Origin: Fimbriosthenelais zetlandica
Taxonomy: Eukaryota
Assembly: GCA_977030845.1 (NCBI GenBank)
Contig: OZ365112.1
Span: forward strand, 21,142,001 to 21,206,000
DNA length: 64,000 nucleotides
Direction: 5' to 3'
The notes under the pieces are model-generated. The model searched no databases. It was not told where the DNA came from and saw only the letters and a list, made by a program, of their open reading frames with translations. This document shows positions 28,901 through 64,000 of this stretch, one piece after another. A program made the position numbers and the translations under genes. How positions within the stretch are numbered: the stretch's first letter is position 1; every line of letters begins with the position of its first letter.

Positions 28901-29198
28901 TTTCCTTTGCGATTGCAACCTAACCCTGACGGTTATGGCAATGTAAAGGTAATCAAATCGTGTTTCTATTTCATCTGCTGGAACATGGCCCAGACGTTAT
29001 AAAAAGAAGTACAAGGACAAAGATGAAGCAATCTGGTCGGAATCATCTCGTCTTGATGGAAGAGATATAACTGTTTTTGCAAAACAGCTCAAATGAAACC
29101 AATTAACAAGTTACACCTTATACAGCTATGCGCTTGGAAAGCTTTTGAAAATGAGTGAAGCATTAAAAGTGAGGTAGAAAATGTAGAAATTTACTAAC

Positions 29199-29763
29199 CC
29201 ATTTCATCAATGTGGTCTGACATGGAGAGAGTTATTCCAACGAGTAACAGACTCATAATGAGCATCAGGCTTGCCAGCACCATCACAATCCTTGCCACTC
29301 TCTTCTGACTGTCTGTCTTAATTTCCTTCGGTGGTATCTGATCAACTGTCCTGTAGGGATCATCTGGTGAGGGGACCAGGTAGGTATATCCCCTACCTCG
29401 GCGGGCATCATGTGTCGACGGTCGATGACTGTGAATAGAACTTTGTCGGGTGCTTGATCTTCGACCTGATCCTCCTGTTGCAGTACTTCCTCTCCTTCCT
29501 CCACCACTTCCTCCTTTTTGTCCTCTCTCTCCTGTCCCTGCTCCTCCTCCAATACTTGGTCTTGGTCTGTCAACACTTGAACCTTCAGGAGGTTTTCCAG
29601 GATGTACTCCTCCTGGAAGTGGAGCAACCAGTGCCAGTCCCTGTGCACCAAACCCTGAAGATGAGCGCCTCTCTGATCCCCCGATCGCACCTGTCGATGA
29701 CCCTGCTGCGACCCCAGCCACTGACAACACCTCAATCCGGTCATCGTGGGTAGAGGAGGTCAT
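29199..29763 (-). CDS. Coding exon of an uncharacterised single-pass membrane protein (disordered Gly/Ser/Arg-rich N-terminus, TM helix near the exon end); 3' exon(s) not identified
   Basis: 188-codon open frame with an in-frame stop upstream and no earlier ATG. Hydrophobic segment IVMVLASLMLIMSLLLVGITLSM is preceded by QKRVAR. The exon ends at a phase-1 donor ATG G|gttagt (29198). Confidence 0.8.
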
Positions 29764-36413: not shown

Positions 36414-38775
36414 GAAGTTCACGTCATCCAAGCGTCATCCCCTGTCCCTTATCTTCGACACATTGTCCTCGGAGATGTCTTTGGCCATACTGTCATGTAA
36501 TCAAGGTACATGTGCCATAGGAATAAGGATGCTTATTCATCAAGATGTGATTTAATGTTTGTCTGTGATGTAAATAGCAGAACTATAAAGTTCTATAGTT
36601 TTTATTCCCTCTGTACCTTTTCCAGGGTGCTGGTAATGATAAGCACATGTTTGCATTGGGGCTTTGGGGGTATCGTTTTTTACTCTCGAACTGCACTTTG
36701 AAAAAGAATGTATACATGGCGTGTCGTCATGAAATATAAATTACTACTCTGCAGCATGGTTATTAGCAGGACCGGGGTTCTTGGAATAAAGGAGAAGTGT
36801 ACATGTTTTAGATTCCAAAACATCAAAACGTCCATGTGAATACTGTTTGTCTCTCGTCACCTCACCACTCGTTATTTTCTATATATACATCTAGCCTTCC
36901 ACCAAAACATACTTGTAAATACCCCCCACCACAATTATAAGGAATACATCACTACAGTGCACGAATACACAAACAACATATTCAAATACACATAGCAACA
37001 AAGGTTAATTCGTTTTCCTGTTCATGTTAACGAAATCACCTAATTTTTATTTCTAGGCATTTTCCAGCCACAGCATATCTCAGCAAGTGAGGTCTTTAGG
37101 ATGTATCAGTTCAGCTGCCTTTACTTCTATCTTGAAACGTTCCAAACAGTTACACACAGAGATAGTTATAGAGCTGCCGTTGCACACCTGTTGCTCGCGT
37201 GTAGCAATTTTTTCAGTAGTTCAAAGAAATATCTAGGCAAGGTGGGTATTATAATGTGAGCAACTATCGAAGAGCAAAGTATCTATACGTACCCGTGAGC
37301 TATTATAGGCCTTTACTGCCTCCTGATCTAGTCGACAGGTCTTACTTGGTCTTTGAATATGTCAAAGAAGTACGGATACATGGATAGATCAACATGATAT
37401 CTTATATAATAATATATACTATATTCCATGTTCAGGACAATTTTTTCATTGTTTTCATTGTGGTTACACCGGAAATGAGGTCAGAGACAGGATAACGCTG
37501 ATGAATGTTGACCTGATGACCTTTGCCCTCATACAACATGCTAAGGGCAGTTGGCCTGGCGCCCTTTGGAATAGCCATCAATGGCTGACCAGTGTACAAT
37601 GCCGGAATGATTAAAGAGTCTGTTGTAATCAGGGGAAGCCTAGGAAGATTTATGCAATACCTTACTCTAAGGCGCACAGATCTTGACCCTGATGAACCCT
37701 GCTCTTTTCTGTGGTTAAATGAAGGAGCAATTGAGGTTTGCGTGAGCTAGCTATTGGAAATGAGGGTCTCAGGGTGGAGAAGGAAAAAGCAAATTAAGGG
37801 GCAAGTTAAGAGCAGTGAGGGAATCTGGTGCGCAAGGCTAAAGGTTATCATTGGTTTGATTTAGCCAATGATACTGCTTTCATTCCTTAGGTATGAATGT
37901 TCGATTTTCTAATACAGGACAAGGACAAGGGCCGGAGTTTCCTTAAGCCCGTTAGCGTGATCCATCAATTAAATTCGCCCTTGTCCTCTCCATTTGGAAC
38001 CGATAAGGACCATCTTCACATCCCTGATTTTGAGCCCGATTGTGGTCAGATTGAGATTGGACCTGGATTAGGCCCATGGAAAAATGTGCTTATCGATCAT
38101 GTGGTGATAGATGTAATCGGGTCAGACTTTTAGAGGATATTAATAATCAGACCAAAATCTGGAGGGGGACCCAATTTTTTTCGACACAGATAGTTATCAG
38201 GCAACTCCATTTTTGTGCTCACATGGGGCAGATAAAAAATCAGGACTGTGGAGATGGTTCTGTTAAGATGGGATGAATCTTGTTAACAGACACCAAATTG
38301 GACTTACAGTATTATGACAAATCAGACTATAGACTATAGAGTCCTTCACATGGCAATATGTCACCTACACCTTGAGGAAACCAAGGTAACGAATTTTTGC
38401 ATCGAAACGCCATCTGGTGTGAATCAAGGAAAGCATTTGTGCAGATATATTTTTCCTGAAAGATTGTCCCCCTCAAATGATCAATAATTAAGTACTTCTC
38501 ACATTAATCAGTGAAAGTTAAACTAATGTGACACAAATCACCTCTATTTTCTTTCTTTCTTTTTTCCCAAAATACAATCCTTCCAAAGCTTTTTGCCGTT
38601 TTGGTTTTTGGGAGTCCAGTTTACACTGGACTCCTTATTCTATTGGGTGGGGGATTCCACATGCACAACATCTTAAACATCTAAATATCTTAAACGCTTT
38701 AAACGTTAACTAGAGCTCTGAACATGTGCATGTATAAATTAGGCGACCTAGGTCAGAGATTGGCCTTTATTGGCC

Positions 38776-46616: not shown

Positions 46617-46737
46617 ATGATGAGTGCGGGTGTAGACCCCGGTCGACCGCCGGGGCTTACATGGTCCGTAATCGTGTTCGTGGTTATAGCTATTTTAAAT
46701 TTGGATAGGATAAACTTTATATCAGCCCAACGATCAC
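46617..46737 (+). CDS. Collagen start exon encoding an N-terminal signal peptide or signal anchor
   Basis: In-frame TAG immediately before the ATG; [40 protein letters not shown] has a hydrophobic core and an I-S-A|Q cleavage-like site; phase-1 donor C|gtaagt. Confidence 0.75.
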
Positions 46738-49700
46738 GTAAGTACCATGATCATTTGGTTTCATTTATAACGAAGGTGTTAATCTTTGTGTATTGCCCTA
46801 CTACCAAATACCCAAGCTTATTGCTATTCATAGTTCCATGTTACATAATGTAATTGACATACCCGGTACCTTTATTTCGTTCACTTCGTTGACCTGATTC
46901 AATGTAAGTAAGATATTCTCTTTCGTTTAAATGACTAGATATGTTTTATTTGGCGCTATGACCATCTGATAGCGATCAATTCTTGCACGTTGATAATGCA
47001 TCTATTGCATGCAAAGCGCTATATCTGACACCTTTCGGAGGTTAGTATGTTATAACAGGATATCTACTGACCACTGTGTATATATGCTTACAGCTCAATG
47101 TTATGAGCTTCAGTCAGTCGCTTTCATGAGGTGGCCGCCTGCAGCCATAATATATTATATATTATATTATCTCGTAATATTATAATTCAGCTGCAAGCCT
47201 GTATGCAAGTCCATAATTATAACAGTGGATAGAATGTATCACCCATGCAAGAAAGGTGTCCTCAAATTGCCCGTGCTTGTATAGTACTTTACTCGTATCC
47301 ATGAACTCTTCACCCTGTGCACCTTGAAGCAATCACCTATACTACAAGCATCCAGCATGCGCCAGTCATAAAGTGTTGAATGTACAGAAATTTAAGATTC
47401 CATCAAGATGAATAATGATTTGCTGTCCTCATCAAGCAGACTACTTGGCGCGCATATGAAGATACTCTTGGCATCGTCTGATTTTTCTTAACCTACCTCT
47501 CCTACGCGTAGTAACTTTATGGTAGTATTTTAGTTTGTCCAGGCATGAAGCTCGATATCCTACTATATATCGAAAAAACTTTACAGAACAGGAGATCAAT
47601 CCACTCGATTTGTTTAGTGAGCGCGCTGCCAGTCAAGTGTGGTATTGATGGTCACTATGCGATATAAGATTTTAAAGCGCGTTAGCTTAAAAACTACTGG
47701 AACTTCAAGTCGGATCAATCAATGCATGAGCTATAGTGGACAACAAATTCTACAAAAAGTGCCATCCAACTGTGAACCATGACCCTAGACCTTCCTTGCA
47801 TTCCTTGACCTAGAAATATCCTTATTTCTAACTTCTGAAGACATTCCTATCTCTGATTTCCCTGAGGGATTCCCATCTGAAACTTTCCCTATGGATATTG
47901 CGCCTGTGCGCGGTGAGGTCCAGCGCCCATTGCAAGTCGCTTGCGGCATGTGGCAAGCTTGCTACTCATGTTCTCTATTCTTATTCCGAAATGGCAGACT
48001 GCTACTATGATCTGAGCTTTGTCATCGATATTGACAAAACCAATGAAGACTGGAGATTGGCTTGGGACACCATGGTCAAGTACATGACCTTCCTGGTAGA
48101 AGATCCCCGTCTGGAGTTTGGTTACAGGACATCGCCAAAAGATCAAGTGGCTATAGTGTCAGGTCTGAGCCCGACCACCTCAGATGTGCAGCTCTATCTG
48201 AATCAAGGTTTCGACCGCACCTTTGTTCTGAACACACTGGAGAACTACTTGGAGTATGGTACAAGTCTACCAGAAGGGATTATGACCCTATACACTAATC
48301 GAAACGGAGGCCCGGTATACTCAATCCGATATGGTGACCGCCCCCAAATGACAGACATAGTCTTCCTGTTGACCAATCGGCGTCGTCTGCCAGGAAACCT
48401 TAAGCAGTATACTGATGAACTTATTAGAAAGAACATGACGGTAATTGGAGTGGCAGTTGGTGAAGCGCCAAATGTGGACGTAGGCATGCTGCAATCAGTC
48501 GTATCTAACAGAAGACTTGTGGTGCAGCTTCCAACTTCCTCAGCAAATTTATATCAACAAAGAGACTTAACTTTTGACTCCATTCTTACTAGAAATTATT
48601 GCCCTCCTCCTACAATAGCTCCACCAATAGGTATTAAGTCATATAATATATAGAATGGTTTTAGGATCATATGTGTGATTATAGTGATGTTGTATCAAAA
48701 TGTTATGCAAAAAATGTGCCCTTCACAATAGGTTCTTGAATAACATCTTGTTTTAACGATCAATTTTGGGGCACTTTTATTAAAAAAGTAATTGATAAGT
48801 GAATTATTTGTTTAATCATACTTTCGAATGATTGACATATTTCTAATTAGATTGTACTACATAGCATCTTTATTTTTTAGCGGGTCCGCCCGGACCCCCT
48901 GGACCCCCAGGGAGGCCCGGTAATTCGGGACGTGATGGTCTACCTGGAACACTTGGAAGCACAGGTCCTACAGGACCTCCAGGAGGACCCGGAGGAAGAG
49001 GACCGGATGGACCCTCAGGTAAATTATTTGCTGGTTCAAAAACTATAAAATATTGTGAATCAAAACCACATTATAACGTAATATGAACCTGCTTCATCAT
49101 AATTCTTTTACAATATTCAAATTGTTAATGAGTTGTAATTGAAGAAGTATAGTTATACTTATAGAGTAACAATTTTCAGGAAATTAAACCGTTATGAGAT
49201 ATTCTATACATGTGCTGGATTTTAAAGGTTCACGTGGCCCCACTGGAAGTAGAGGAGGATCAGGACCTCTTGGACCAACTGGACCATCAGGACCACTAGG
49301 AACACGTGGGCCATCTGGCGGTCCAGGATCTACTGGAGTACTTGGCCCACTCGGACCAAGAGGACCTCCCGGACAACCTGGTCGTCCAGGTGGTCCAGGT
49401 GGTCCAGGATCCCCTGGATCCAGGGGATCTCGAGGACCTCCTGGGGGAAGAGGTGGAACTGGAATAACTGGCGAAGTAGGTCCACCCGGATCTGATGGAT
49501 CTCAGGGACAACGTGGACCCCAAGGACCTCAGGGTCCTCTAGGTCCTAGTGGTACAGGTGGACGACCAGGACCTCCAGGAAGGCAAGGATCAAGGGGTCC
49601 AAGAGGCCCTGGAGGACCAACAGGTAGAAATAATACTTATATTCTTCTATTTTTGATACCTATAGTGCATAATAACTATAATTATAACGAGGGGAAATTC

Positions 49701-52700
49701 CAATCGTCATTTGTCATCTAGGTACCGGCTATCTTCACAAGCCGTTTCTGATATTTTGAATTTAAACATATATAATTATAATATATAATCTTATTACATC
49801 GACATTATTTAGACCGTTGACATTTCTAGGTGGTTAAGGATACAGATTAATTTCATTACATCGACATTATTGCAAACCTTTGAAATTATTTCCAGGTGGG
49901 TTAGGAGAAGTAGGACCCCCTGGACAATCAGGAAGACCTGGGCCATCAGGTCCTGTTGGCGTAACTGGTGTTAGAGGAGGAACAGGAGCCGTTGGTGATG
50001 CTGGACCACAGGGTCCACGAGGATCTTCCGGTGAATCTGGTCCTGCTGGTGAAATAGGCCCACCTGGTCCATCTGGCCCACTTGGCCCATCAGGTCCTAG
50101 GGGACCAGCAGGAGACTCCGGACCTTTGGGACCAGGAGGACCCCAAGGATCTCGAGGATCACCTGGACCATCAGGCCCAACAGGAGTATCTGGACCAACA
50201 GGAGCCTCAGGTTTACCAGGATTTCGTGGCCGACCTGGAGAAAGAGGCCCTGGTGGACCAAGCGGTCTATCTGGACCTACTGGTGTCAGTGGACCAGCTG
50301 GGGAACGTGGCCGACCTGGACCACCAGGCCCACGAGGATCACAGCCTGGCCCTGCTGGACCTGCTGGTACCCCTGGAGGCAGGGGCCCTGCTGGAGGACG
50401 AGGTCCTCCAGGCCCTACTGGTGTAGCTGGAGGGCCAGGTAACGCTGGACCACCAGGCAGATCTGGACCCTCAGGTGAATCTGGAGAAAGAGGTCCACCA
50501 GGACCAACAGGAGCAATCGGATCCAATGGTAAGTATTGATCTGGAAATGTAGAAAATAATGAATTACCTACTGTTCTGTCTACATAATTCATAATTTCCT
50601 ACCATACAATTATGATTTTAGGTGTGGAACGATTTTTTTAATTGAAAGTAATCTTTGAACTATTTGTGTTTGATTCAGGTCCATCTGGTCCATCTGGTCC
50701 ACCTGGAGGAACAGGAGTACTTGGTCCCGCTGGACCAACAGGACCACGTGGCCCAGCTGGACCAGCTGGGTCCCAAGGTGAGAGCGGTGCAGCAGGTCCA
50801 GTTGGCCCCCTAGGTTCCGCAGGACCATCTGGTGAACGTGGGGAAAGGGGCCCATCTGGACCAACAGGTGCAGCTGGAGGGCCAGGATCCAGAGGTCCAA
50901 GAGGGCCTTCAGGTCCATCAGGTCCAGCAGGAGGATCAGGTGGGTTACCCGTATATTTTCACTTCTATTGATAATTTTTTCCCAATCTCATTCATTTTGT
51001 TTTACAAACTTAAATGATATCTGGAAACATATCAACACACATGCTTTATTTATTGATATCATGCACTATGAAACTGATGATTTCATAACTAATGATTTAA
51101 TTTTAATGCCTTCTGTTAATTGCAGGAGAGATTGGCCCTGATGGTCCAGCTGGTCCACAGGGCTCAAGAGGATCCCGAGGACCTGCCGGACCACCAGGTG
51201 GTTCAGGCGTCCCAGGCGCAGGCGGCCCTAGTGGTCCACGAGGTCCAGCTGGTCCCTCAGGTAATATTCTTCACTACTTTGTCTATCTTCATTTAATAAA
51301 ATGGCAATTCTCTATCATAAGTTTAGTGTCGAAGCATGTGAATAAGTTTGGCAGTATTGCTGATTTATTCTATGTGTTGGCTCTACATTATATAAAAATC
51401 GTGGATAACTGATTTCTCTAGTTCTTGATTATCAATATTTGTAGGTGAGGCTGGCCCAAGTGGTGCGCAAGGATCTGCAGGTCCATCGGGCCCAGCAGGA
51501 CCATCAGGTGAAGCTGGACTACCAGGCCCTGTTGGTGCTGTTGGAGTAACAGGAGTAAGAGGACAACCAGGAAACCGCGGGCCTCGTGGCCCTGCTGGAC
51601 CTTCTGGCGAAGGAGGCGAAGCCGGGTCACCTGGTTCGCCAGGACCTACTGGTCCCAGTGGACCTTCAGGTGAATAAACATTTCCTCTAGAACAACTAAG
51701 TAAACAATGTCCATTTTCTTCCCAGACCCCTGTCTCTGCTACTTGCTGCCATGAGGATCTGGTTTATTATTTCATATTCATAATTGCTTTCATAATTTTT
51801 ATTTTCGCAAATTTCATTAAAAACAAACTGATTATCTCTACCAATAGGAGAGCGGGGCCCAAGAGGACCAACTGGTGCCGGTGGCCCCACTGGAGCTTCA
51901 GGACAGCAAGGATCAAGGGGATCAAGAGGTCCTGCTGGACCTTCTGGGCCAACTGGCTCAGCTGGTGAAGTTGGAGGTGTTGGACCAGCTGGACCTTCTG
52001 GGCCTAGAGGGGAGAGAGGAGGATCAGGCCCTGCTGGACCAACCGGTGCTCAAGGATCAAGGGGGCCAAGGGGACCATCCGGACCTTCAGGACCAGCTGG
52101 AGAGGCTGGTGAATCAGGCCCAGGTGGATCCCCAGGCCCAAGAGGTCCACGTGGACCCAGTGGACCTACTGGCGCAGGAGGTCCAACAGGTGCAGTAGGA
52201 TCTGATGGCCCAGCAGGACCATTGGGACCTGGTGGGGAACGTGGAGAGAGAGGACCAGGGGGACCCACTGGAGCAGCAGGAGGGCCAGGTTGTAACATTT
52301 TCCCTACTCTACTATAATTGTATTTGGCGACTATTTATTTTTGTAAGATAATCGTAAGGCATTCAATTTAATCTCCATCAAGAAATGATTTGATATTGCT
52401 GGTACAAGGCTCTGATATCTGGAATGGCATCCATTCATTTGAAAAGGCCTACACATGGCCGTGTGTATTGGAACTAATTGAAAAGTATTTTGGCAGGACC
52501 AAGAGGACCTGCAGGCCCTAGAGGAGAGAGGGGGGGAGATGGACCTCCAGGATCTTCTGGACCAGCTGGACCATTGGGACCATCTGGCCCAAGGGGACCA
52601 GCTGGGGAAGGTGGTGAAGATGGGCCACCAGGACCTTCAGGAAGACGAGGAGAGAGGGTAAAACATTTAAAATTTACTGAACCTCACATTTTAATACTAC

Positions 52701-55700
52701 AAATTTTCTGGACCATCTGTAATCTCACTCCTCACTGTTACATTTCGTGTTGGTTATTTGTTATTTCTTAGGGACCTCGTGGACCAGCTGGTGAAGCTGG
52801 AGAACCTGGGGAAGGTGGGTCTCTTGGACCTGCTGGACCCTCAGGACCTCGAGGAGAATCGGGCGAGAGAGGACCATCTGGACCTACTGGAGCAGGCGGA
52901 CCTCTTGGGCCTGCAGGACCTCAAGGACAACGTGGACCACGGGGAGAACGTGGCCCCACAGGAGTGGGTGGACCAACAGGTACTTGAGCTGTTCCAATAT
53001 CTACTTACAGAACATGGTGAAATACCAGATTGTCTAAAGTTGTCACAACTTTCCTAATATTTGTTCCTTTATTACGTTCATCAAATTATATTTATCTGGA
53101 TCTTATATCGAGTATCTTTATGGTATATTATTTCCTTGGCATGATAGGCATATCATTAATCACATCACACTAAACAAATTTAGGAGCTGATGGTCGACCT
53201 GGTCCAAGAGGAACACGTGGACCTGCTGGAGAAGGTGGTCCACCTGGAGAAACTGGCGGTCTAGGTCCAGCAGGGCCAGGTGGACCTCGTGGTGAACGAG
53301 GACCAGCAGGTCCAACTGGAGTTGGAGGACCAACTGGTGCTGGAGGTCCTAGAGGAGAATCGGGACCAGCAGGACCCCGAGGTGAATCGGGAGAAGCTGG
53401 ACCTCCGGGAGAATCAGGTCTCCCCGGTCGTAGTGGTCCAGGTGGACCCAGAGGCCCAGCAGGACCTGGCGGCCCCACTGGAGCTGTTGGAGAAGCTGGT
53501 CCAAGAGGTCCCTCTGGACCCCGTGGAGAGCCTGGTAGGTTCTGTTCAGTATAATTAAAAAAATGTTCCCGTCTAACATTGGATCGATATTTCAAGAATT
53601 TCCACTGTTCTTGAATTACAAGAATATTTATAAAATACTTTCGTATTTCAGGACCAAGTGGTCCACCAGGTGAAACTGGATCAGCTGGACCAGGAGGGCC
53701 GCGTGGTCCCGCCGGACCAAGAGGATCATCTGGGCCTACTGGTGCTTCAGGGCAACCTGGACCAGCAGGCAGACTAGGAAATGCCGGAAGACAGGGTCCA
53801 AGTGGTCCATCAGGCCCACCAGGTCCTTCTGGGGCAGCAGGCGAGACTGGATCTGGAGGTTCTCCTGGTCGTCAAGGTAAGCTTTTTTAATAGAATACAT
53901 CTAGCTATTTTGGACATTAAGGAAATTATATACTAATGGGGGTTTAAAGAGAAAATGAAAATAATTTGATATCAAGTTGATTGTTTATAATATTTTAATA
54001 ATTCAGGACCGCGTGGACCTTCTGGGGAGGCAGGAGAATCTGGACCAGCTGGCCCAGCAGGACCGACTGGCCCAAGTGGACCAAGTGGGGAACGAGGTGT
54101 TCGTGGTCCTACTGGAGTCACTGGTGTTGGAGGGCGAACTGGTGCTGCTGGCTTCCGAGGACAACCCGGAGCAAGAGGTCCCTCTGGCCCACCAGGTGAC
54201 ACAGGATCTGGGGGCCCAGTTGGCCCAGCTGGGCCAAGCGGACCATCAGGAGAAAGAGGACAAGCTGGTGAGCGAGGTTCAACAGGTACTGTTGGAAGGA
54301 CTGGAGCTGCTGGTCCCTCTGGTCCAAGAGGACCAGCTGGGGAGTCAGGAGAGCAAGGTTCTCCAGGACCTGCAGGCCGTGCTGGCCCTGATGGGAGGCC
54401 TGGACCCTCTGGCCCTCGTGGTGAAGGTGGAGAAAGAGGACCTGGTGGTCCCACAGGAGGATTAGGACCTAGAGGTTCCAGAGGTCCAGCAGGCCCACCT
54501 GGTGAGGCAGGTGAAACTGGTGTTGCAGGACCATCTGGACCCTCAGGACCTTCAGGACAACAAGGTGAGAGAGGAGAGAGAGGACCTGGTGGTCCAACTG
54601 GAGGTTTGGGTCCCGCAGGACCAAGAGGACCAGCTGGCCCAAGAGGAGAAAGAGGAGAAAATGGGGAAGCAGGATCAGTCGGTCGTGACGGTCCACCAGG
54701 ACGTTCAGGACCAAGAGGACCATCAGGTCCTACCGGATCAGGTGGCCCTACCGGTGTGGCTGGTTCTCGTGGTCCAAGAGGTCCATCTGGCCCAAGGGGG
54801 GGAAGAGGACCTGCAGGTCCGACTGGTGCTTCTGGTCCACTTGGACCTAGTGGCCCATCAGGACCAAGGGGAGAGGCAGGTGAGCCCGGAGAGGCTGGTG
54901 AACCTGGAGAACAAGGCCGAGCTGGACCTAGTGGAGAAAGAGGGGCCCGAGGGGAGGCTGGTCCTGGAGGCCCTACAGGAACTCCTGGCAGACCCGGACC
55001 ATCTGGACCAAGAGGACCACGTGGAGAAGGTGGAGAGAGAGGTACACCTGGTCCCACAGGTAAGTCTTTTTCTTAATTCACAAATTGTATCAAAGAAAGA
55101 GTAAAAGTTACTGATCAAGATCCCAGTAATAACATTGGTAAATTTGATTACTTCCCATCAGTGATACTGATATCACATGATTTTTCATGAATAAAGTTCT
55201 ATATTTATATTATTTACATGTTCTATGTAGGTTAGACACATTTTTTTCTATCTATTCAGGTGTTGCTGGTCCAATTGGATCGAGTGGACCAAGGGGACCA
55301 TCTGGACCACCAGGCCCAACAGGTGCAGCTGGTGAGTCTGGACCACGAGGCGGACCAGGATCCCAAGGCACACGTGGTCAACCAGGACCAGCTGGAGAAT
55401 CTGGAGGTGACGGTCCACCAGGCCCTGCAGGACCACGTGGAGCACGTGGTCAGGCTGGTGAAAGAGGACAACCTGGACCAACAGGTCAGATATTAATCTT
55501 ATAGCAGTATTAGCAACATAGAATTTATGAGTTTAAAAAAACGTCTGAATTTCGAGAACATGAAATATACACTCACATACTTTATTTTTTAGGGAGATAC
55601 ATGTAATAACTATCTGTTTCTTTAGGTGCTGCTGGTGGATTGGGCCCTGCTGGCCAAGCTGGACCACGTGGACCAGCCGGACCGACTGGAGAAGGTGGTG

Positions 55701-58700
55701 AACAGGGTGAGCCTGGACTTCCAGGAAGTGGTGGCCGTCCAGGCCCAGATGGCAGATCAGGACCTCGAGGTATGACTGATATATAATATAGTAGTAATAA
55801 TTTATTTCTTAATATAACGCATATATATATCCAGTACTTAGACCTGAGGGCATGTAACCTTGTTGATTGATAAGTCTGATTAGTTTGCTCTGTGGCATGT
55901 ATTGGAATAGATAACACCTGATGAATGTTGTTCAATATGAATTTTTCAGGTCCCTCAGGGCCATCTGGTGCCCCAGGTCCGACTGGAGCTGCAGGTGAAT
56001 CTGGTCCTCGTGGTCCTTCTGGTCCATCTGGACCACCAGGAGAACAAGGCGAAGGAGGACCTGCAGGATCTGTTGGAAGACCCGGTCCAAGGGGTCCATC
56101 TGGACCACCAGGGCCACAAGGAGAAGGTGGTTCAACTGGTGTTGTAGGAGAATCAGGTAGGTTTTCATTAAGACAAGTTTGCGATAATGATTGTGCAATA
56201 ATATGGGCATAATACATCCACAGTCTGGTCATAGACCTGCTCTGTGATATTCTTGTATAGTCTTGTAAGTTTATTACCTAAACTAGTGTCTTTAGTCCTG
56301 TAATTTTCTTTTGCAGGACCCCGTGGTCCAGCTGGACCTTCAGGTGAGAGAGGAGAGCGGGGCCCATCAGGTCCCACAGGTGCAGGAGGTCCACGAGGAT
56401 CATCTGGCCCATCAGGTCCACGTGGTGAGCGTGGTGGACCAGGGACTACAGGGAGTGCAGGTCCCCTTGGTCGGCCAGGTCCCTCAGGTGAAAGAGGAGA
56501 ACGGGGAGAGGCTGGAGAAACTGGTACACCTGGTAGAACCGGGGCTGCTGGTCCTAGTGGCAGACAAGGAGAACGTGGTGCCCGTGGTCCAGCTGGACCA
56601 TCAGGAGAAACAGGTGCTGCTGGAGAGGCAGGTACATCTGGCCGGCCAGGACCCAGAGGTGGACGGGGAGAGCGTGGCCCAGCTGGAGGCCCTGGAGCAA
56701 CAGGGCGTGTCGGTTAGTTGACGTTCTTGTAAATTTGCTTATAATTAGTTTAATACTGTTAAATCGGTTTTATTTAAATGTAGTATAGTATACATATAGG
56801 CAAAATTATACACATGTACATGTATTATGTCATGTCATTAAGAATGTTCATAGTTTTATGTTGAGATTACTTTGTAAGATACTCCTTTGTTCATTTCCAG
56901 GACCATCTGGTCCTAGTGGCCCTCAAGGTGAGCGTGGTGGACCAGGTCCTGCAGGACCTACTGGCAGTTCTGGCCCCAGAGGACCTCAAGGCAATGCAGG
57001 TACACGAGGATCACGAGGGCCTGCAGGACCGACTGGTGTAGCAGGAGAAATTGGACCAGGTGGCAGCCCAGGCAGACAAGGTCCAAGAGGTCCATCTGGA
57101 CAAGCAGGTGAAGGAGGTGAAGCTGGTCCTCCAGGTCCGTCCGGTGCGAGTGGACCACGTGGCCCGTCTGGTCCATCAGGACCTCGAGGAGAAAGAGGGG
57201 AAACCGGTTCTTTAGGATCACCGGGCCCATCTGGTCCTTCTGGACCGCGTGGAGAACGTGGTGAAAGAGGAGAAGGTGGTGAACCTGGAGTAGGTGGAAG
57301 GACTGGATCAGCAGGCCCTCGAGGGCCCTCAGGAGAGGGAGGTGAACGTGGTCCTCCTGGACCCACTGGATCCATTGGCGTTGCTGGACAATCTGGACAA
57401 CGTGGAACCCCAGGAACCAGAGGTCAGCGTGGTGAACGTGGACCACCTGGTCCTACTGGTTCTGTTGGGAATCTAGGACGGCCAGGACCAGGAGGTCCGC
57501 GTGGAGCAAGAGGCGAAGCTGGAGAAACTGGATCAGTAGGAGAAGGTGGCCCACAAGGAGGCAGAGGCCCACGAGGCCCATCTGGACCTCCTGGTGTATC
57601 TGGCCCTACTGGGGCAGCAGGGGAGGCAGGATCAAGAGGCCAGGCAGGCCGTGATGGTAAGTTGTTTGTTTAATATGTACATTATTACATAGATGTACAT
57701 AGATTTCCATTTTCTCAGACTTTCATTATCTTTCCATCAAACCCTCAATATGTAGGCAATTTCTTACATGTATTTATGGCTCCTCTTCTAAAAATTACCA
57801 TTCTCAGAATTGTTTTATACTTTCCATTTATTATTCCATTTCACTATTCTTCCATTTTTCTTATTCTCCATATGTATGTATCTCATTCCCTTTAATAATT
57901 TACAATCATGTATTATGATAATTTATAAAATAAAATTCATCGAAGGTTCCCGTGGCCCTGCTGGAGAAAGAGGAGAGCCTGGAGAACCTGGTTCGGCTGG
58001 ACCATCTGGCCCTTCTGGACCTCGCGGACCTTCTGGGGAAAGGGGCGAGAGGGGTCCTGGTGGACCCACAGGTTCTGTAGGACGTCCTGGGCCAACAGGA
58101 CCTTCTGGACCAAGTGGAGAAGCAGGTGGCAGAGGTGAAACTGGAGCTCCTGGCAATGCTGGTAGAGCAGGTAAATAGTCTGCACTTAATATTTTCGTTA
58201 GCGCTATTTTCTCTATTTTGATCTATAGTATTTCGTCTCTGTGTCTTATATCTTTTAGATTTCTCTACAGGTCGTTAAACTTGTAAACCAGACATTAGAA
58301 ACCATATAAATATATTGCAGGTCCTACTGGCCCCCGTGGACCAAGTGGAGAAGGTGGACCAAGAGGTCCAACTGGTGCTCCTGGTCCTGATGGGCCAGCC
58401 GGTCCCAGAGGTGGATCCCTTGGAAGAGGAGAAAGAGGAGAAAGAGGTCCTCCTGGTCCCACTGGAGGACTTGGACCAGCTGGTCCTCGCGGTCCATCTG
58501 GAGAACGTGGAGAAAGAGGTGAAGGTGGTGAACAAGGAGCACCAGGTCCACCGGGTCTTGGTGGGCCACGTGGGCCATCCGGACCTGCTGGTTCACCTGG
58601 GCCAACCGGTTCTATTGGTATTTCGGGAGCTGCGGGACCAAGAGGACAGAGGGGAAGTCAGGGTGAACGTGGACCTCCAGGTGAGAAACTTTGGATTTCT

Positions 58701-61700
58701 TTTACAACTTTTTTCATTTTGTAATTAGGTGTTTCTTCTGTTTTTGCTCATAGGAAATTTTGATTATATCAATATTTATTTTGACTATGTAAATGACCTC
58801 AAATTCATATCACAGGTGGTACTGGAACACTTGGGAGACAAGGAGAACAAGGTGCCCGCGGACCTTCAGGTCCATCTGGTGAGGGTGGAGAAGCTGGAGA
58901 AGCAGGTTCTCCAGGCCCTCCAGGACGTGGTGGATCAGCTGGACCCCGAGGGCCTTCCGGACCACCAGGCCCTACAGGAAGCATTGGATCATCCGGTGCT
59001 GCTGGGCCAGGTGGACCAAGAGGTCAAAGAGGAGAGCCAGGTGAGAGAGGGAGTCCAGGCACACCAGGTAATTCTGGATCAACTGGTGTTCTAGGTAACG
59101 CAGGTCCAAGGGGCGCCCCAGGCCCAAGGGGGCCAAGGGGACCTTCTGGATCTCCAGGGCCTACTGGGTCACTGGGCTCTGCAGGCAACCGTGGTGAACA
59201 AGGAGAACGCGGAGAAAGGGGACCAGGAGGACCCACAGGTGGTGCAGGATCAGCAGGACCAAGAGGTCCCCAAGGAGCAAGTGGAGAGCGTGGTCCACCT
59301 GGACCCACAGGATCCGCTGGACCCGATGGAAGGTCAGGACCAAGTGGACCTCGTGGACCAGCAGGACCACAGGGTGAAGCAGGCGAAGCAGGTGAAGGTG
59401 GTCCAGCTGGCAGAGCAGGATCACCTGGAGCAAGAGGGCCAAGAGGCCCAGGAGGAGAGCGAGGACCCCCAGGATCTACTGGCACTGGAGGACAGCCTGG
59501 GGAAGTTGGATCTCCTGGTGGTCAGGGTGCACGAGGTGAACGTGGACAACGTGGAGAACCAGGCACCCAAGGTAAGCTATTTTCTTCAGTAACAATGTGG
59601 CATAATGTGTAAGGATATTCACATACTCAAAAGGCAGTAGCTTATTCTTTTGCAGTAGGCTACATTTAGTATTTTACTGAGTATTTTTGCAAACGTGTAA
59701 TACACACATATTGTACATGTACATGGTGGTTTATTCTTGTAGGCTCGCCAGGACAACCTGGTCCAGCAGGACCAAGTGGTGAGAGAGGTCGGCCAGGTGC
59801 TGGTGGAGAACGTGGACCACCAGGGGGCACAGGTACACTTGGAAGTCCAGGAGCAGCTGGACCACGGGGACCTCGAGGTCCTTCAGGACCTACTGGAGTT
59901 GCGGGTCAACCAGGTGACAGTGGAGCAGCTGGGCCAAGTGGTCCATCAGGACCGGGTGGACCTAGAGGAGAGGCTGGTGAAGCTGGGGAGAGTGGTGAGC
60001 CAGGGCCAGCAGGATCACGGGGACGTGCTGGTTGGTATACCTGCTTATAACTCGAAAAAATATGCTTATTTATTCATGTCGTTTAGAAGACATTGAAAAA
60101 ATACCATGTTAAATTACATTTACAGGTTCTCCTGGACCAAGTGGACCACGTGGACAACCAGGGCCTAGTGGCGCTATTGGAAGAGCTGGTGAAGCTGTAA
60201 GTTTCCTCCGCATTGAATCCCATTTTAGTGGCAATTTTTTATTTTCATAATCTCTTGGGTCACTGGCGTAAAATCTGGAATAAATATATATAGGATCCAA
60301 CCTTATATTTCTGCATTTTTATGTAGGGAGCTCGTGGCCCAGCAGGAGAACGTGGACAGGGTGGAACGCCTGGTGAAAGAGGAGAACCAGGGCAACCTGG
60401 TGAGGCTGGCCGAGCTGGTCCATCTGGACCTCAAGGTGAACGAGGGCCAAGAGGAGAGGCTGGAGCCGGTGGTGAAGCCGGATCTCAAGGTTCTCCAGGT
60501 AAGCATATTTCCACTTTATCGTAACAAGCTTCAAGGGCCATTTATAATACCTTCACTAAAAATGAAATTACATTTTAGTATTTTAGTAGATACTTTTAAA
60601 GAACATTTTAAGACAATGTAAAGTATTCAAGATGATGCTCATCTAAAGAATTAGATTTGAAATAATTCTAACTGTTCTCAACACTTGTCGTCAAATGCAA
60701 AAATCTGGGCAGAAAAATTAATCATCATATTCATAAATTCTTTTGTGTACAGATTGGCAGAAGTCTAATTTTAAAGGGATAATATCAATGGTGGAAAAGT
60801 AAATAGAAATGAATTTTTATGAAATCGCTAAAATGCCTAAATATTTCTCTTTCCCTCAACATAATATAATATAATAATATAATATATGTATATTATTGGC
60901 TTCTTTGGCATTTAATTGATTAGACAGTAACGTGTTTGGAGGGATATTACTGAAAATATGACTTACTTCCCAGTTTTTTATTATCATGTACCTCTGAGAA
61001 TTTATATAGATCCCATGTCGTTACACACAACCTGTATGCATGGTCGTTACACGTAATGCAAGGCCTTAGAGCAACTCTCCTATACATAATGGAGCTCTTA
61101 TGGATGTGGACATCTGGCTACCCATTTATGAACTCATATTTATAATTCTTTTACCTAACCCCTTTCTTCCTTTATATAGGTATGGGTCTACCGTTTTAAA
61201 GCATAAAATTAAAGTCACATCACTGGGAAAAATGCATATGTTATCTCATTCCCTTCAATCAGAAATGGTCTGAGCTCTTATTCTATTCACTAGTGCTATC
61301 CGCTAGGGTACAAGTAACGACGCATTACGAGTAATGAAATGCTGTCTATTTCTTCCATGGTACACAAATAGGACTTGGAAGAAGGGGGACTAAGCGGATC
61401 TTTATATGGTTGACCTAGCAATTATTTTTCAATATTAAATATCAGCTCGGCATACATCATACAAGTTTGTTAAACATTATAAATATCAGCTCTCTATTAT
61501 TATTATTTGATATCGCTATTATTTAATATCGCTACACATGACCAGTGTAGAATAATGCATTACGTGTAACTACGGTAAATTACCCAAAAATATTTAATGG
61601 AATAGCTCCCCATGTCCAAAAGCAGGCTTTGATCTTCTTTGCATTTTAAGATATTTCAAGGTCCTGCTATTCGAATAAAATGTGTATTAAATAGTTTCAT

Positions 61701-64000
61701 ATAATGATATTTTTTAGATGAGATAATATATTTTCAAACCTTCTATTTATGCAGGCCCGGCTGGTTCAAGAGGAAGTAGGGGTGAAAGGGGTCCTTCAGG
61801 CCCAACAGGGTCAGCCGGTCTCCCAGGTCCCCGTGGATCGGATGGAAGATCAGGGCCAACTGGGCCTGCTGGACCAAGAGGTGAACAAGGTGAACGGGGG
61901 CCTGGCGGAGAAGCTGGTCGTCCAGGTTCACCGGGAAGAAGAGGATCTCCAGGTATAGTAGAAGTTTCTTCTGTTCTGTGCCAATATATTGATATGAAAG
62001 CATCTTGACTCACACATCAAACGTTTTCACTTATGATAATTATTAGGCCTACATGAAAACTTATTTTTTAGGACCAAGAGGACCGCCACAAGAACCAGCA
62101 GAAAATATCCCTGGCCCACCAGGTCCAACTGGTGCTATTGGTAGTCCAGGGACTCAGGGAGACCGTGGACCACCTGGGGAATCAGGAGAACCCGGTGAAG
62201 CTGGTCGTGCAGGTAGTCCAGGTGGTGCTGGACCACGAGGCCCACAGGGAGAACGTGGACCCCAGGGAGAGCGTGGAGGTGCCGGCCCATCTGGTTCAGC
62301 TGGACCAAGAGGTCCATCCGGACCATCTGGACCTGCAGGTGAGGCTGGTGAACCAGGCGAACAAGGCCCTGCTGGCCCTGCTGGATCACGTGGTTTGCCT
62401 GGAGAACGCGGCCAGTCAGGTGAGGCAGGAACGCCTGGTGAGAGAGGTGAGCCTGGTCCACAAGGTAGTCCAGGACGTGCTGGACCTCTTGGACCTGCCG
62501 GTCCATCTGGCGAGGCAGGTGCACGTGGCGAAGCTGGTGAAAGAGGCAGAGATGGCCAGCCTGGTCGTGATGGTGAACCTGGACGTGATGGATCTGCAGG
62601 ACTTCCTGGACCCAGGGGCAGACCCGGGTCACAAGGTGAACAAGGTGAACAAGGCGAACGTGGTGAGGTTGGTGCTCCTGGCTCTGCTGGTTCAGATGGG
62701 CGACGGGGAGGTGGTGGTGAACGAGGACAACCTGGTCCACCAGGACCTACTGGTGCTGCTGGAGAACCTGGTTCAAGAGGCCCAGCAGGTCCGACAGGAG
62801 AAAGGGGGGAAAGAGGACAAGCTGGAGAAGGTGGTCAAAGAGGTGAGCCAGGAAGTGCTGGAAGGGCTGGATCACCTGGCCAAAGAGGAGAACGTGGTCC
62901 AGGAGGATCCGCAGGAGCCCCTGGCCCCGATGGTGAAGCTGGTTCCCAAGGAGAGCCTGGACCAAATGGTGCAGCTGGCCCACAAGGAGAAAGGGGACAA
63001 CGTGGAGAAGCTGGATCACCAGGTATGACATACATTAATTCTGTCAAGCATGGAAATATCACATTATAAATATCTTTGTCGTTCTGAAATCATCTTGATA
63101 GAGACTTAGTTAAATGACACATGGCTTTGTTTTGTAGGAAATGCTGGACGCGATGGAACCCCAGGTCTTCCTGGAGAGGCCGGAAGGTCAGGTCCATCTG
63201 GACCCGCTGGATCAGCTGGAGAAAGAGGACAACCTGGTGAAGCTGGACCTCGCGGAGAACAGGGAACTAGAGGTTCACAGGGACCACAGGGAGCTGGTGG
63301 AGAAAGAGGACGTGCTGGTGCTTCAGGTGCACCGGGTCTTCCAGGTGAACGTGGACGTGACGGTGAGGGTGGTGCCAGAGGTCCTGCTGGACCATCAGGA
63401 CCAGCTGGAGCTGATGGAGAAGCTGGTCAACCTGGACCAGCTGGACCACAGGGAGAGCGCGGTCAACCAGGAGAACGAGGTCAACCTGGAGAAGCAGGAC
63501 AGGCAGGAGAAGCAGGAGAGCCTGGACGTCCTGGTCCCGCAGGCAGAGCAGGTCCACAAGGGTCATCTGGCCCCCAAGGTGAAGCAGGAGCTCGTGGGGA
63601 GCAAGGACAAAGAGGAAGTGATGGCAGACCTGGTAGTGCTGGCCGTCCTGGTAAACAAAGTTTCATATTGATATCCAAATTGTATAAAAAATATAATATA
63701 TATGAATTAAAATATAACATGAAGTAAATGAATATCACAATTATAAGCCTGGAATTTTACAGCAGGAAGAGGTCATTGTCTAGACAGGGCCTGCAATGGA
63801 TGTCCATATATTAGCAGTGATGGTATTTACCTTTTTACAGGCGAGAGAGGACCACGTGGACCTTCAGGTCCTGGAGGGCCCCAAGGTCCAACTGGTGCAG
63901 CTGGGCCATCCGGCCAGCGTGGAGAAGCTGGTGAACGCGGCCAGCCAGGTCAATCTGGTGCTCTTGGAGAACAGGGCCCTCGTGGACCAGATGGACCAGC
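46617..64000 (+). CDS. Giant vWA-domain collagen, 3' partial: signal peptide - vWA - about 1,070 Gly-X-Y triplets
   Basis: Hand-spliced coding exons: 46617-46737, 47841-47912, 47998-48630, 48881-49018, 49228-49623, 49896-50528, 50679-50939, 51126-51260, 51445-51669, 51848-52288, 52497-52657, 52772-52979, 53184-53534, 53652-53876, 54007-55059, 55260-55484, 55626-55769, 55950-56156, 56317-56712, 56901-57656, 57946-58170, 58321-58680, 58816-59571, 59743-60030, 60126-60196, 60327-60498, 61755-61952, 62072-63022, 63138-63650, 63841-end. All are GT-AG, phase-compatible and stop-free. Extra small exons between 46738 and 47840 cannot be excluded. Confidence 0.92.
47998..48630 (+). CDS. von Willebrand factor A domain exon of the collagen (divergent)
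   Basis: 633-nt phase 1-1 exon: [12 protein letters not shown] (beta-A), [14 protein letters not shown] (compare the usual IVLTD), MTVIGVAVG, ending NYCPPP. Flanking Cys residues are typical of vWA modules. Confidence 0.85.
48881..62088 (+). CDS. Collagen triple-helical domain 1, about 893 Gly-X-Y triplets
   Basis: Continuous Gly-X-Y across 24 exons plus the start of a 25th; only imperfections are GSQP (50336-50347) and GGSLGR (58410-58427). Confidence 0.9.
60861..60886. repeat. (ATAAT)n microsatellite in the longest intron of the helix-coding region
   Basis: ataatataatataataatataatata read directly. Confidence 0.6.
62113..64000 (+). CDS. Collagen triple-helical domain 2, more than 175 triplets, runs off the window
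   Basis: Gly-X-Y resumes after the QEPAENIP linker and continues without interruption to position 64000. Confidence 0.9.

Follow-up and report, generated by a model that had tools for sequence, protein, structure and literature searches.

A probable giant cuticle collagen gene of Fimbriosthenelais zetlandica with a triple helix free of lysine

Introduction

The giant cuticle collagens of annelids are about 2.5 µm long in most species. Biochemical work reportedly found decades ago that they lack hydroxylysine and carry their sugars on Ser and Thr residues; Lys, His, Tyr and Met occur in traces, and Pro or Hyp (hydroxyproline) is common at the X position. They are described as combining globular domains with a very long triple helix of unusual composition (PMC11766948). 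Gly-Hyp-Ser was the topic of work on the cuticle collagen of earthworms (Goldstein & Adams 1970), and from the cuticle collagen of Nereis, a sugar unit of glucuronic acid and mannose has been characterized. In the literature searched, no gene-level or full-length sequence description of an annelid cuticle collagen was found. Here, we describe a collagen gene in a stretch of 64,000 nucleotides from Fimbriosthenelais zetlandica (GenBank assembly GCA_977030845.1, contig OZ365112.1, positions 21,142,001 to 21,206,000 of the forward strand), hereafter the window, whose triple helix is free of lysine. The predicted protein opens with a signal-like segment and a single vWA-like head, behind which runs a triple helix with very few breaks, and the gene is likely to encode an annelid-type giant cuticle collagen chain.

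The absence of lysine sets this helix apart from fibrillar collagens. Type I collagen contains about 3.7% Lys, with 37 residues in α1(I) (PMC11923368). A 2025 study proposes Lys-Glu/Asp salt bridges (KGE/KGD) as a general collagen folding code, their number rising with helix length, and quotes the longest collagen chains at 6,000 residues (PMC11923368).

Composition of the helix

The gene model was rebuilt with scripts that scanned the 64-kb window for Gly-X-Y runs, joined the exons at their splice sites and translated the result automatically. The exon model for F. zetlandica is based on splice signals and cross-species exon conservation. The + strand contains Gly-X-Y runs nowhere but between 48883 and the window end, where they cover ~3,280 residues if intron read-through is counted; the minus strand has short mirror-image runs only. 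Each run lies between an AG acceptor and a GT donor, giving 27 helix exons between 48881 and 64000 on the + strand, which join into a single open frame of 3,216 codons without a stop.

Lys, His, Cys, Met, Trp and Tyr are all absent from these 3,216 residues. The helix is written in an alphabet of 14 letters, with Arg as the sole basic residue: Gly accounts for 36.6%, Pro 19.3%, Arg 9.4%, Ser 8.5%, Ala 8.1%, Glu 6.5%, Thr 3.7% and Gln 3.2%, followed by Val (1.5%), Leu (1.4%), Asp (1.0%), Asn (0.5%), Ile (0.4%) and two Phe residues. The original prediction had named the same six missing residues, with Arg as the only base, in a helix of about 3,200 residues starting at 48881; start and length proved exact. 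Its statement that the vWA domain uses Lys normally also holds, as the vWA exon (211 residues) encodes 5 Lys, 13 Tyr and 6 Met. Every Lys in the raw open reading frames (ORFs), as in GKL, GKY or GKS at the ends of runs, represents GGT AAG, i.e., a donor G|GTAAG that has been read through. Phase 1 is found in 24 of the 26 helix introns, where the Gly codon is split as G|GN. Consequently, both the G of the acceptor AG and the GT of the donor are still translated as part of a Gly codon in the genomic frame, and the raw ORFs end in GKL, GKY or GKS.

The X position is occupied by Pro in 42% and by Glu in 19% of triplets, and the Y position by Arg (22%), Ala (18%), Pro (16%), Ser (15%) and Thr (9%). 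Glu is confined to X and occurs in none of the 1,067 Y positions of the window, while Gly takes up 5% of the X and Y positions and Asp, Asn and Leu are likewise tolerated. The commonest triplet is GPS; GPS and GPT are enriched 1.5-2.3x and GER 1.5-1.65x, and the helix is also rich in Gly-Pro-Ala. GPP, normally the most stabilizing triplet, is depleted to 0.64x in the window and 0.23x in the full orthologue described below. RGE was considered as a direct stand-in for KGE and rejected, its enrichment being weak (1.2x). No significant charge or hydrophobic period between 6 and 400 residues, including the 234-residue period, was detected in the helix, and the lack of a charge period in the predicted chain fits unbanded fibers.

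Since the translated helix contains no Lys, it offers no substrate for lysyl hydroxylase, for glycosylation of hydroxylysine (Hyl) or for cross-linking by lysyl oxidase. The earlier proposal that helical Lys-derived cross-links are missing is borne out to this extent, as neither Lys/Hyl cross-link sites nor sites for Hyl-linked sugars can be read from the sequence.

Conservation in orthologues and relatives

A full-library protein search with the vWA head as query returned three close fragments with identities of 59%, 41% and 40%, two of which carried a precomputed PF00092 assignment. The search also returned mollusc collagen-VI-like proteins, all of them without a Gly-X-Y region. When one helix exon was used as query, only bacterial and phage collagen-like proteins were obtained; these served as a control for Lys frequency and not for orthology. 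The contigs of the fragments carry the same gene, with exon sizes (in residues) of 45, 132, 210, 87, 45, 75, 147, 54, 69, 117, 75, 351, 75, 48, 69 and 132, equal to those in the window.

The orthologue in ENA ERZ25767047 was traced from end to end, with 76,930 bp merged without conflict. Its ~70 collagen exons encode a helix of 8,625 residues, i.e., 2.47 µm at 0.286 nm per residue, in which Lys, His, Cys, Met and Trp are absent and Tyr occurs twice. Each raw “K” in this orthologue lies either after GGT at a run end or in GGC AAG at one GC-AG intron. The exon before that intron (merged positions 37994-38263; L007:14044-14313) ends in G|GCAAGT, and the other ~70 introns are GT-AG. In a second haplotype, 16 of 1,519 residues are different and Lys is likewise absent. 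Composition varies along the orthologue rod (residues 0-8,625): Pro, Ser and Thr are abundant in the N-terminal 1,000-2,000 residues and Ala, Gln and Glu in the middle 5,000; in the last 600, Pro is abundant once more and some Phe occurs.

A single Lys, in a GPK triplet, was found among 594 N-terminal helix residues of a closer relative (Logan ERR14368248). The tail exon of the orthologue further led to a contig of 5,380 bp (Logan ERR14707600) with one intron-free frame of 1,485 residues, which therefore represents a spliced transcript and provides indirect evidence that the gene family is expressed. ERR14368248, the sample of the closer relative, contains the same tail protein as well. The contig is colinear with the last ~1,356 helix residues of the ERZ25767047 orthologue. 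Its 1,360 helix residues include no Lys, no His, 2 Met and 2 Tyr, and the 125 non-helical residues right after the helix include 14 Lys; in this coding sequence, Lys is excluded precisely inside the helix boundaries. The sole Tyr residues of the helices, and the Met residues in the relative's transcript, lie within the last ~260 helix residues. With no Lys in 8,625, one in 594 and none in 1,360 residues, the exclusion of Lys put forward in the original prediction extends to the orthologues, and all species pooled show 1 Lys in total among ~13,800 helix residues.

Selection against lysine

Third codon positions of the gene contain 18.7% GC (GC3; 81% A/T) and its introns 29% GC; the exons reach 62% GC only because of their Gly, Pro, Ala and Arg codons. 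With silent sites and introns biased toward A/T, mutation pressure would favor the Lys codons AAA and AAG. Indeed, 518 X/Y codons, among them 111 AGA, 144 GAA and 72 CAA, are one substitution away from Lys. Lys codons make up 4.3% and His codons 5.2% of the nonsynonymous one-step neighbors, with neither residue present, whereas Asn accounts for only 1.3% of the one-step routes and yet is represented by 15 residues. Counted individually, the routes to absent residues number 651 for His, 539 for Lys, 270 for Cys, 167 for Tyr, 65 for Trp and 59 for Met, compared to 160 for Asn.

Of 1,143 X/Y positions aligned between the window and the ERZ25767047 orthologue, 50% are identical and 573 differ. Mutation alone would be expected to place ~25 Lys among these 573 replaced sites, and none was observed (P about 2e-11): no difference involves Lys, and the 47 window Arg positions that changed in the orthologue became Pro, Ser, Ala or Gly, never Lys. 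The control collagen-like proteins retrieved with the helix exon average 3.6% Lys in Gly-X-Y, a frequency that predicts ~116 Lys for a helix of this size. Recent internal duplication or concerted evolution was rejected as the cause, and a founder effect is unlikely, because the similarity among equally long exons (X/Y identity 0.11-0.28) does not exceed that of random in-register segments (0.14 ± 0.07). As judged from these comparisons, purifying selection keeps Lys, His, Cys, Met and Trp out of the helix, and nearly does so for Tyr. The A/T-rich GC3, the 518 near-Lys codons and the missing Lys replacements thereby uphold the suggestion that an absence over such a length reflects selection.

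Organization of the gene

Four small breaks interrupt Gly-X-Y in the spliced helix: two of a single residue each, one of two residues and one of eight, the octapeptide QEPAENIP. With these breaks excepted, the sizes of the helix exons are multiples of 9. The exons of the window are listed below; unless stated otherwise, each is based on the splice model together with comparison to the orthologues.

46617..46737 (+), exon 1: start codon and hydrophobic signal-like segment; ORF and donor read, with the phase-1 donor C|GTAAGT fitting exon 2
47998..48630 (+), exon 2: vWA-like globular head, 211 aa (Pfam PF00092 E=0.0011, under the curated cut-off)
48881..49018 (+), helix exon 1: equal size in both orthologues
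49228..49623 (+), helix exon 2: 132 residues in all three species
49896..50528 (+), helix exon 3: one-residue break GSQ-P-GPA, kept in orthologues
50679..50939 (+), helix exon 4
51126..51260 (+), helix exon 5
51445..51669 (+), helix exon 6
51848..52288 (+), helix exon 7
52497..52657 (+), helix exon 8: phase-0 donor
52772..52979 (+), helix exon 9: phase-0 acceptor
53184..53534 (+), helix exon 10
53652..53876 (+), helix exon 11
54007..55059 (+), helix exon 12: largest, 351 residues, equal size in the orthologue
55260..55484 (+), helix exon 13
55626..55769 (+), helix exon 14
55950..56156 (+), helix exon 15
56317..56712 (+), helix exon 16
56901..57656 (+), helix exon 17: corresponds to two exons of 60 + 192 residues in the orthologue
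57946..58170 (+), helix exon 18
58321..58680 (+), helix exon 19: two small breaks; orthologue break at the same place
58816..59571 (+), helix exon 20
59743..60030 (+), helix exon 21
60126..60196 (+), helix exon 22: phase-0 donor; splice model
60327..60498 (+), helix exon 23: phase-0 acceptor; splice model
61755..61952 (+), helix exon 24: splice model
62072..63022 (+), helix exon 25: sole longer break, 8 residues (QEPAENIP); splice model
63138..63650 (+), helix exon 26
63841..64000 (+), helix exon 27: ends at the window edge; splice model, the orthologue going on for ~5,400 helix residues

Beyond an invariant Cys, exon 2 extends for 9 residues; the G at its end is the first base of an Ala codon that the next exon completes. 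By this model, the window portion is the first ~37% of the gene, which continues past the window end. At least two of the helix breaks, the Pro insertion in exon 3 and the break in exon 19, share their position with the orthologue. Such conserved breaks resemble functional kinks or sites of recognition rather than errors.

Outside the collagen gene, an ORF at 29197-29763 on the - strand would encode the N-terminal portion of a membrane protein resembling type II proteins, in which a cytoplasmic part rich in Ser, Gly and Arg precedes a hydrophobic segment; two ENA homologues only were found for it. No other long ORF is present in the first 46 kb of the window.

C-terminal end in orthologues

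Three elements come after the helix in the orthologues: a juxtamembrane stretch rich in Lys, a segment of ~22-25 hydrophobic residues that spans the membrane, and a conserved tail. The post-helix region of the ERZ25767047 orthologue (ctg38949) spans L011:15390-15782, with the membrane segment at L011:15510-15584 and basic residues after it. The tail of ~65-75 residues carries the motif SAFADSVYNKSS.VDFDGPFKGGKW and was found both in the orthologue and in the transcript contig (L012:3-4457). According to this predicted topology, the giant collagen would be synthesized as a membrane protein with its anchor at the C-terminus. A homologue of the vWA head (P0122) and a homologue of the tail (P0134) are located on one 502-kb contig of ENA ERZ26222911, where the head-to-anchor architecture probably recurs.

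Discussion

Such a helix would draw its stability from Pro or Hyp at the X position, from Arg at the Y position and from Ser and Thr, which are probably O-glycosylated, with additional Glu-Arg pairs. The fibers would cohere in the absence of covalent bonds derived from Lys, in keeping with a cuticle collagen that is unbanded and extractable with acid. Tentatively, we suggest that a Lys-free helix of ~8,600 residues, among the longest known, folds without Lys-Glu/Asp bridges and that the excluded residues may mark an inert, cross-link-free outer fiber, whose molecules could slide or intercalate as the non-moulting animal grows.

Selection might instead have acted on chemical inertness and not on the avoidance of cross-links, as the excluded set contains every nucleophilic or easily oxidized side chain; we regard this as possible, if rather doubtful. 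Quinone tanning from gland secretions would have little effect on an external, long-lived fiber of this kind, and neither would aldehydes, sulfide or oxidants. The one-step routes given above agree with this explanation: His is missing despite having more routes than Lys, and Cys, Tyr, Met and Trp are missing as well, while inert residues with fewer routes, such as Asn, are present. The same residue set is missing over the 8,625 residues of the orthologue. Avoidance of lysyl oxidase alone leaves the loss of His and Met unexplained, and it is an inert surface fiber that covers the whole missing set. The argument from the complete set is weakened by the absence of Cys, Trp and Tyr from most collagen helices, which leaves only Lys, His and Met as unusual here, and by the sparse Met and Tyr near the C-terminal helix end of the relatives.

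It seems improbable that helix stability alone accounts for the missing lysines. In this scenario, there is little Pro or Hyp at the Y position, so that Arg becomes the best stabilizer there and out-competes Lys, and neither cross-linking nor chemistry is under selection. A modest preference of this kind predicts few Lys, not nearly none in ~13,800 residues across species, and the helix tolerates the destabilizing Gly at X/Y as well as Asp, Asn and Leu. The excess of Arg over Pro at Y (22% vs 16%) and the depletion of GPP do agree with it. In host-guest peptide work, Gly-Pro-Arg is reportedly about as stabilizing as Gly-Pro-Hyp. Replacement of Hyp by Lys costs 10 °C, which counts in favor of a stability effect, but KGE and KGD pairs are themselves stabilizing (PMC11923368).

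The original prediction had drawn from the absence of helical Lys, and from nothing else, a reversibly assembled fiber of mutable or rapidly deployed connective tissue. This is highly improbable and did not find support, since the length, the vWA head and the triplet usage, rich in Gly-Pro-Ser/Thr, fit a permanent cuticle and the C-terminal membrane anchor of the orthologues suggests ordered assembly at the cell surface and not a deployable store. A gene-model artefact, in which Lys-bearing exons or alternative donors were missed, can be dismissed with near certainty: although the model rests on DNA of this species and several donors are weak (GTTGTA, GTCAGA, GTTAGT), the exon sizes in multiples of 9 (breaks aside) are conserved in two other species, the script scan found no further Gly-X-Y run in any intron, and the intron-free transcript contig of a relative reads through 1,360 helix residues without Lys.

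Several observations weigh against an annelid-type giant cuticle collagen chain with strict exclusion of Lys. The vWA match lies under the Pfam cut-off (PF00092 E=0.0011), and hydroxylation and glycosylation are predictions that are unreadable from DNA. One Lys occurs in the helix of a relative, so that the exclusion is very strong and not absolute. Finally, the C-terminal membrane anchor of the orthologues is foreign to the classical description of cuticle collagen.

The chemistry of these collagens is largely known already from amino-acid analyses, and what is new is the gene-level detail. At the sequence level, the helix is strictly Lys-free and kept so by selection across species, which would provide a gene-level account of why such collagens lack hydroxylysine, Hyl-linked sugars and lysyl-oxidase cross-links. 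As the orthologue helix exceeds the 6,000-residue bound without KGE or KGD, and with RGE enriched just 1.2x, it may represent a natural counter-example to the proposed folding code that is worth testing. It could also serve as a template for the design of Lys-free, chemically quiet recombinant collagens.

Comparison with known collagens

Like the fibrillar collagens (types I-III, V and XI and their invertebrate homologues), the chain has a long uninterrupted Gly-X-Y region in which Glu prefers the X and Arg the Y position. In contrast to them, it is ~8 times longer, contains no Lys, has mostly phase-1 introns and exons that are not based on 54 bp, and lacks the 234-residue periodicity. Fibrillar collagens combine a helix of ~1,000 residues that carries Lys cross-link sites with a C-propeptide (COLFI) behind it; they were ruled out, since the helix here reaches 3,216 residues within the window alone and 8,625 in the orthologue, contains no Lys, and in the orthologue has a membrane anchor in place of the propeptide. 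Nematode cuticle collagens, whose short chains of ~300 aa contain interrupted blocks of Gly-X-Y flanked by Cys and are cross-linked through Tyr (PMC11766948), were ruled out by a helix without Cys or Tyr and with 4 small breaks in 3,216 residues.

The orthologues share with the membrane-anchored collagens XIII, XVII, XXIII and XXV the combination of a helix and a single membrane-spanning segment. In those type II proteins, however, the anchor is N-terminal and the helices are short and interrupted, whereas here the anchor is C-terminal and comes after a signal-like N-terminus and a helix of 8,600 residues; type II membrane collagens were ruled out on this ground. The bacterial collagen-like proteins (Scl-type) resemble the chain in that charged residues, and not Hyp at the Y position, largely stabilize the helix, and Lys is also missing from some short examples (23 of 120 matches). 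In contrast to the chain described here, they are short, single-exon, prokaryotic proteins with a mean of 3.6% Lys, and homology is limited to the repeat.

The closest resemblance is to the giant cuticle collagens of Nereis, Lumbricus, Arenicola, Alvinella and Riftia (Gaill et al. 1995, Mann et al. 1996, cited in PMC11766948), with which the chain shares a very long helix, a globular domain at one end, Pro/Hyp at X and Ser/Thr at Y and the absence of periodic charge. Unlike the Riftia cuticle collagen, the window chain is not dominated by Thr. Its helix is of micrometer length (0.92 µm for the 3,216 residues in the window, 2.47 µm in the full orthologue), and a vWA-like exon just before the helix, conserved in the orthologues, places a globular domain at the end of the rod. 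At the DNA level, the composition fits a cuticle collagen, with Lys, His, Tyr and Met absent, Pro at 42% of X positions and GPS as the leading triplet.

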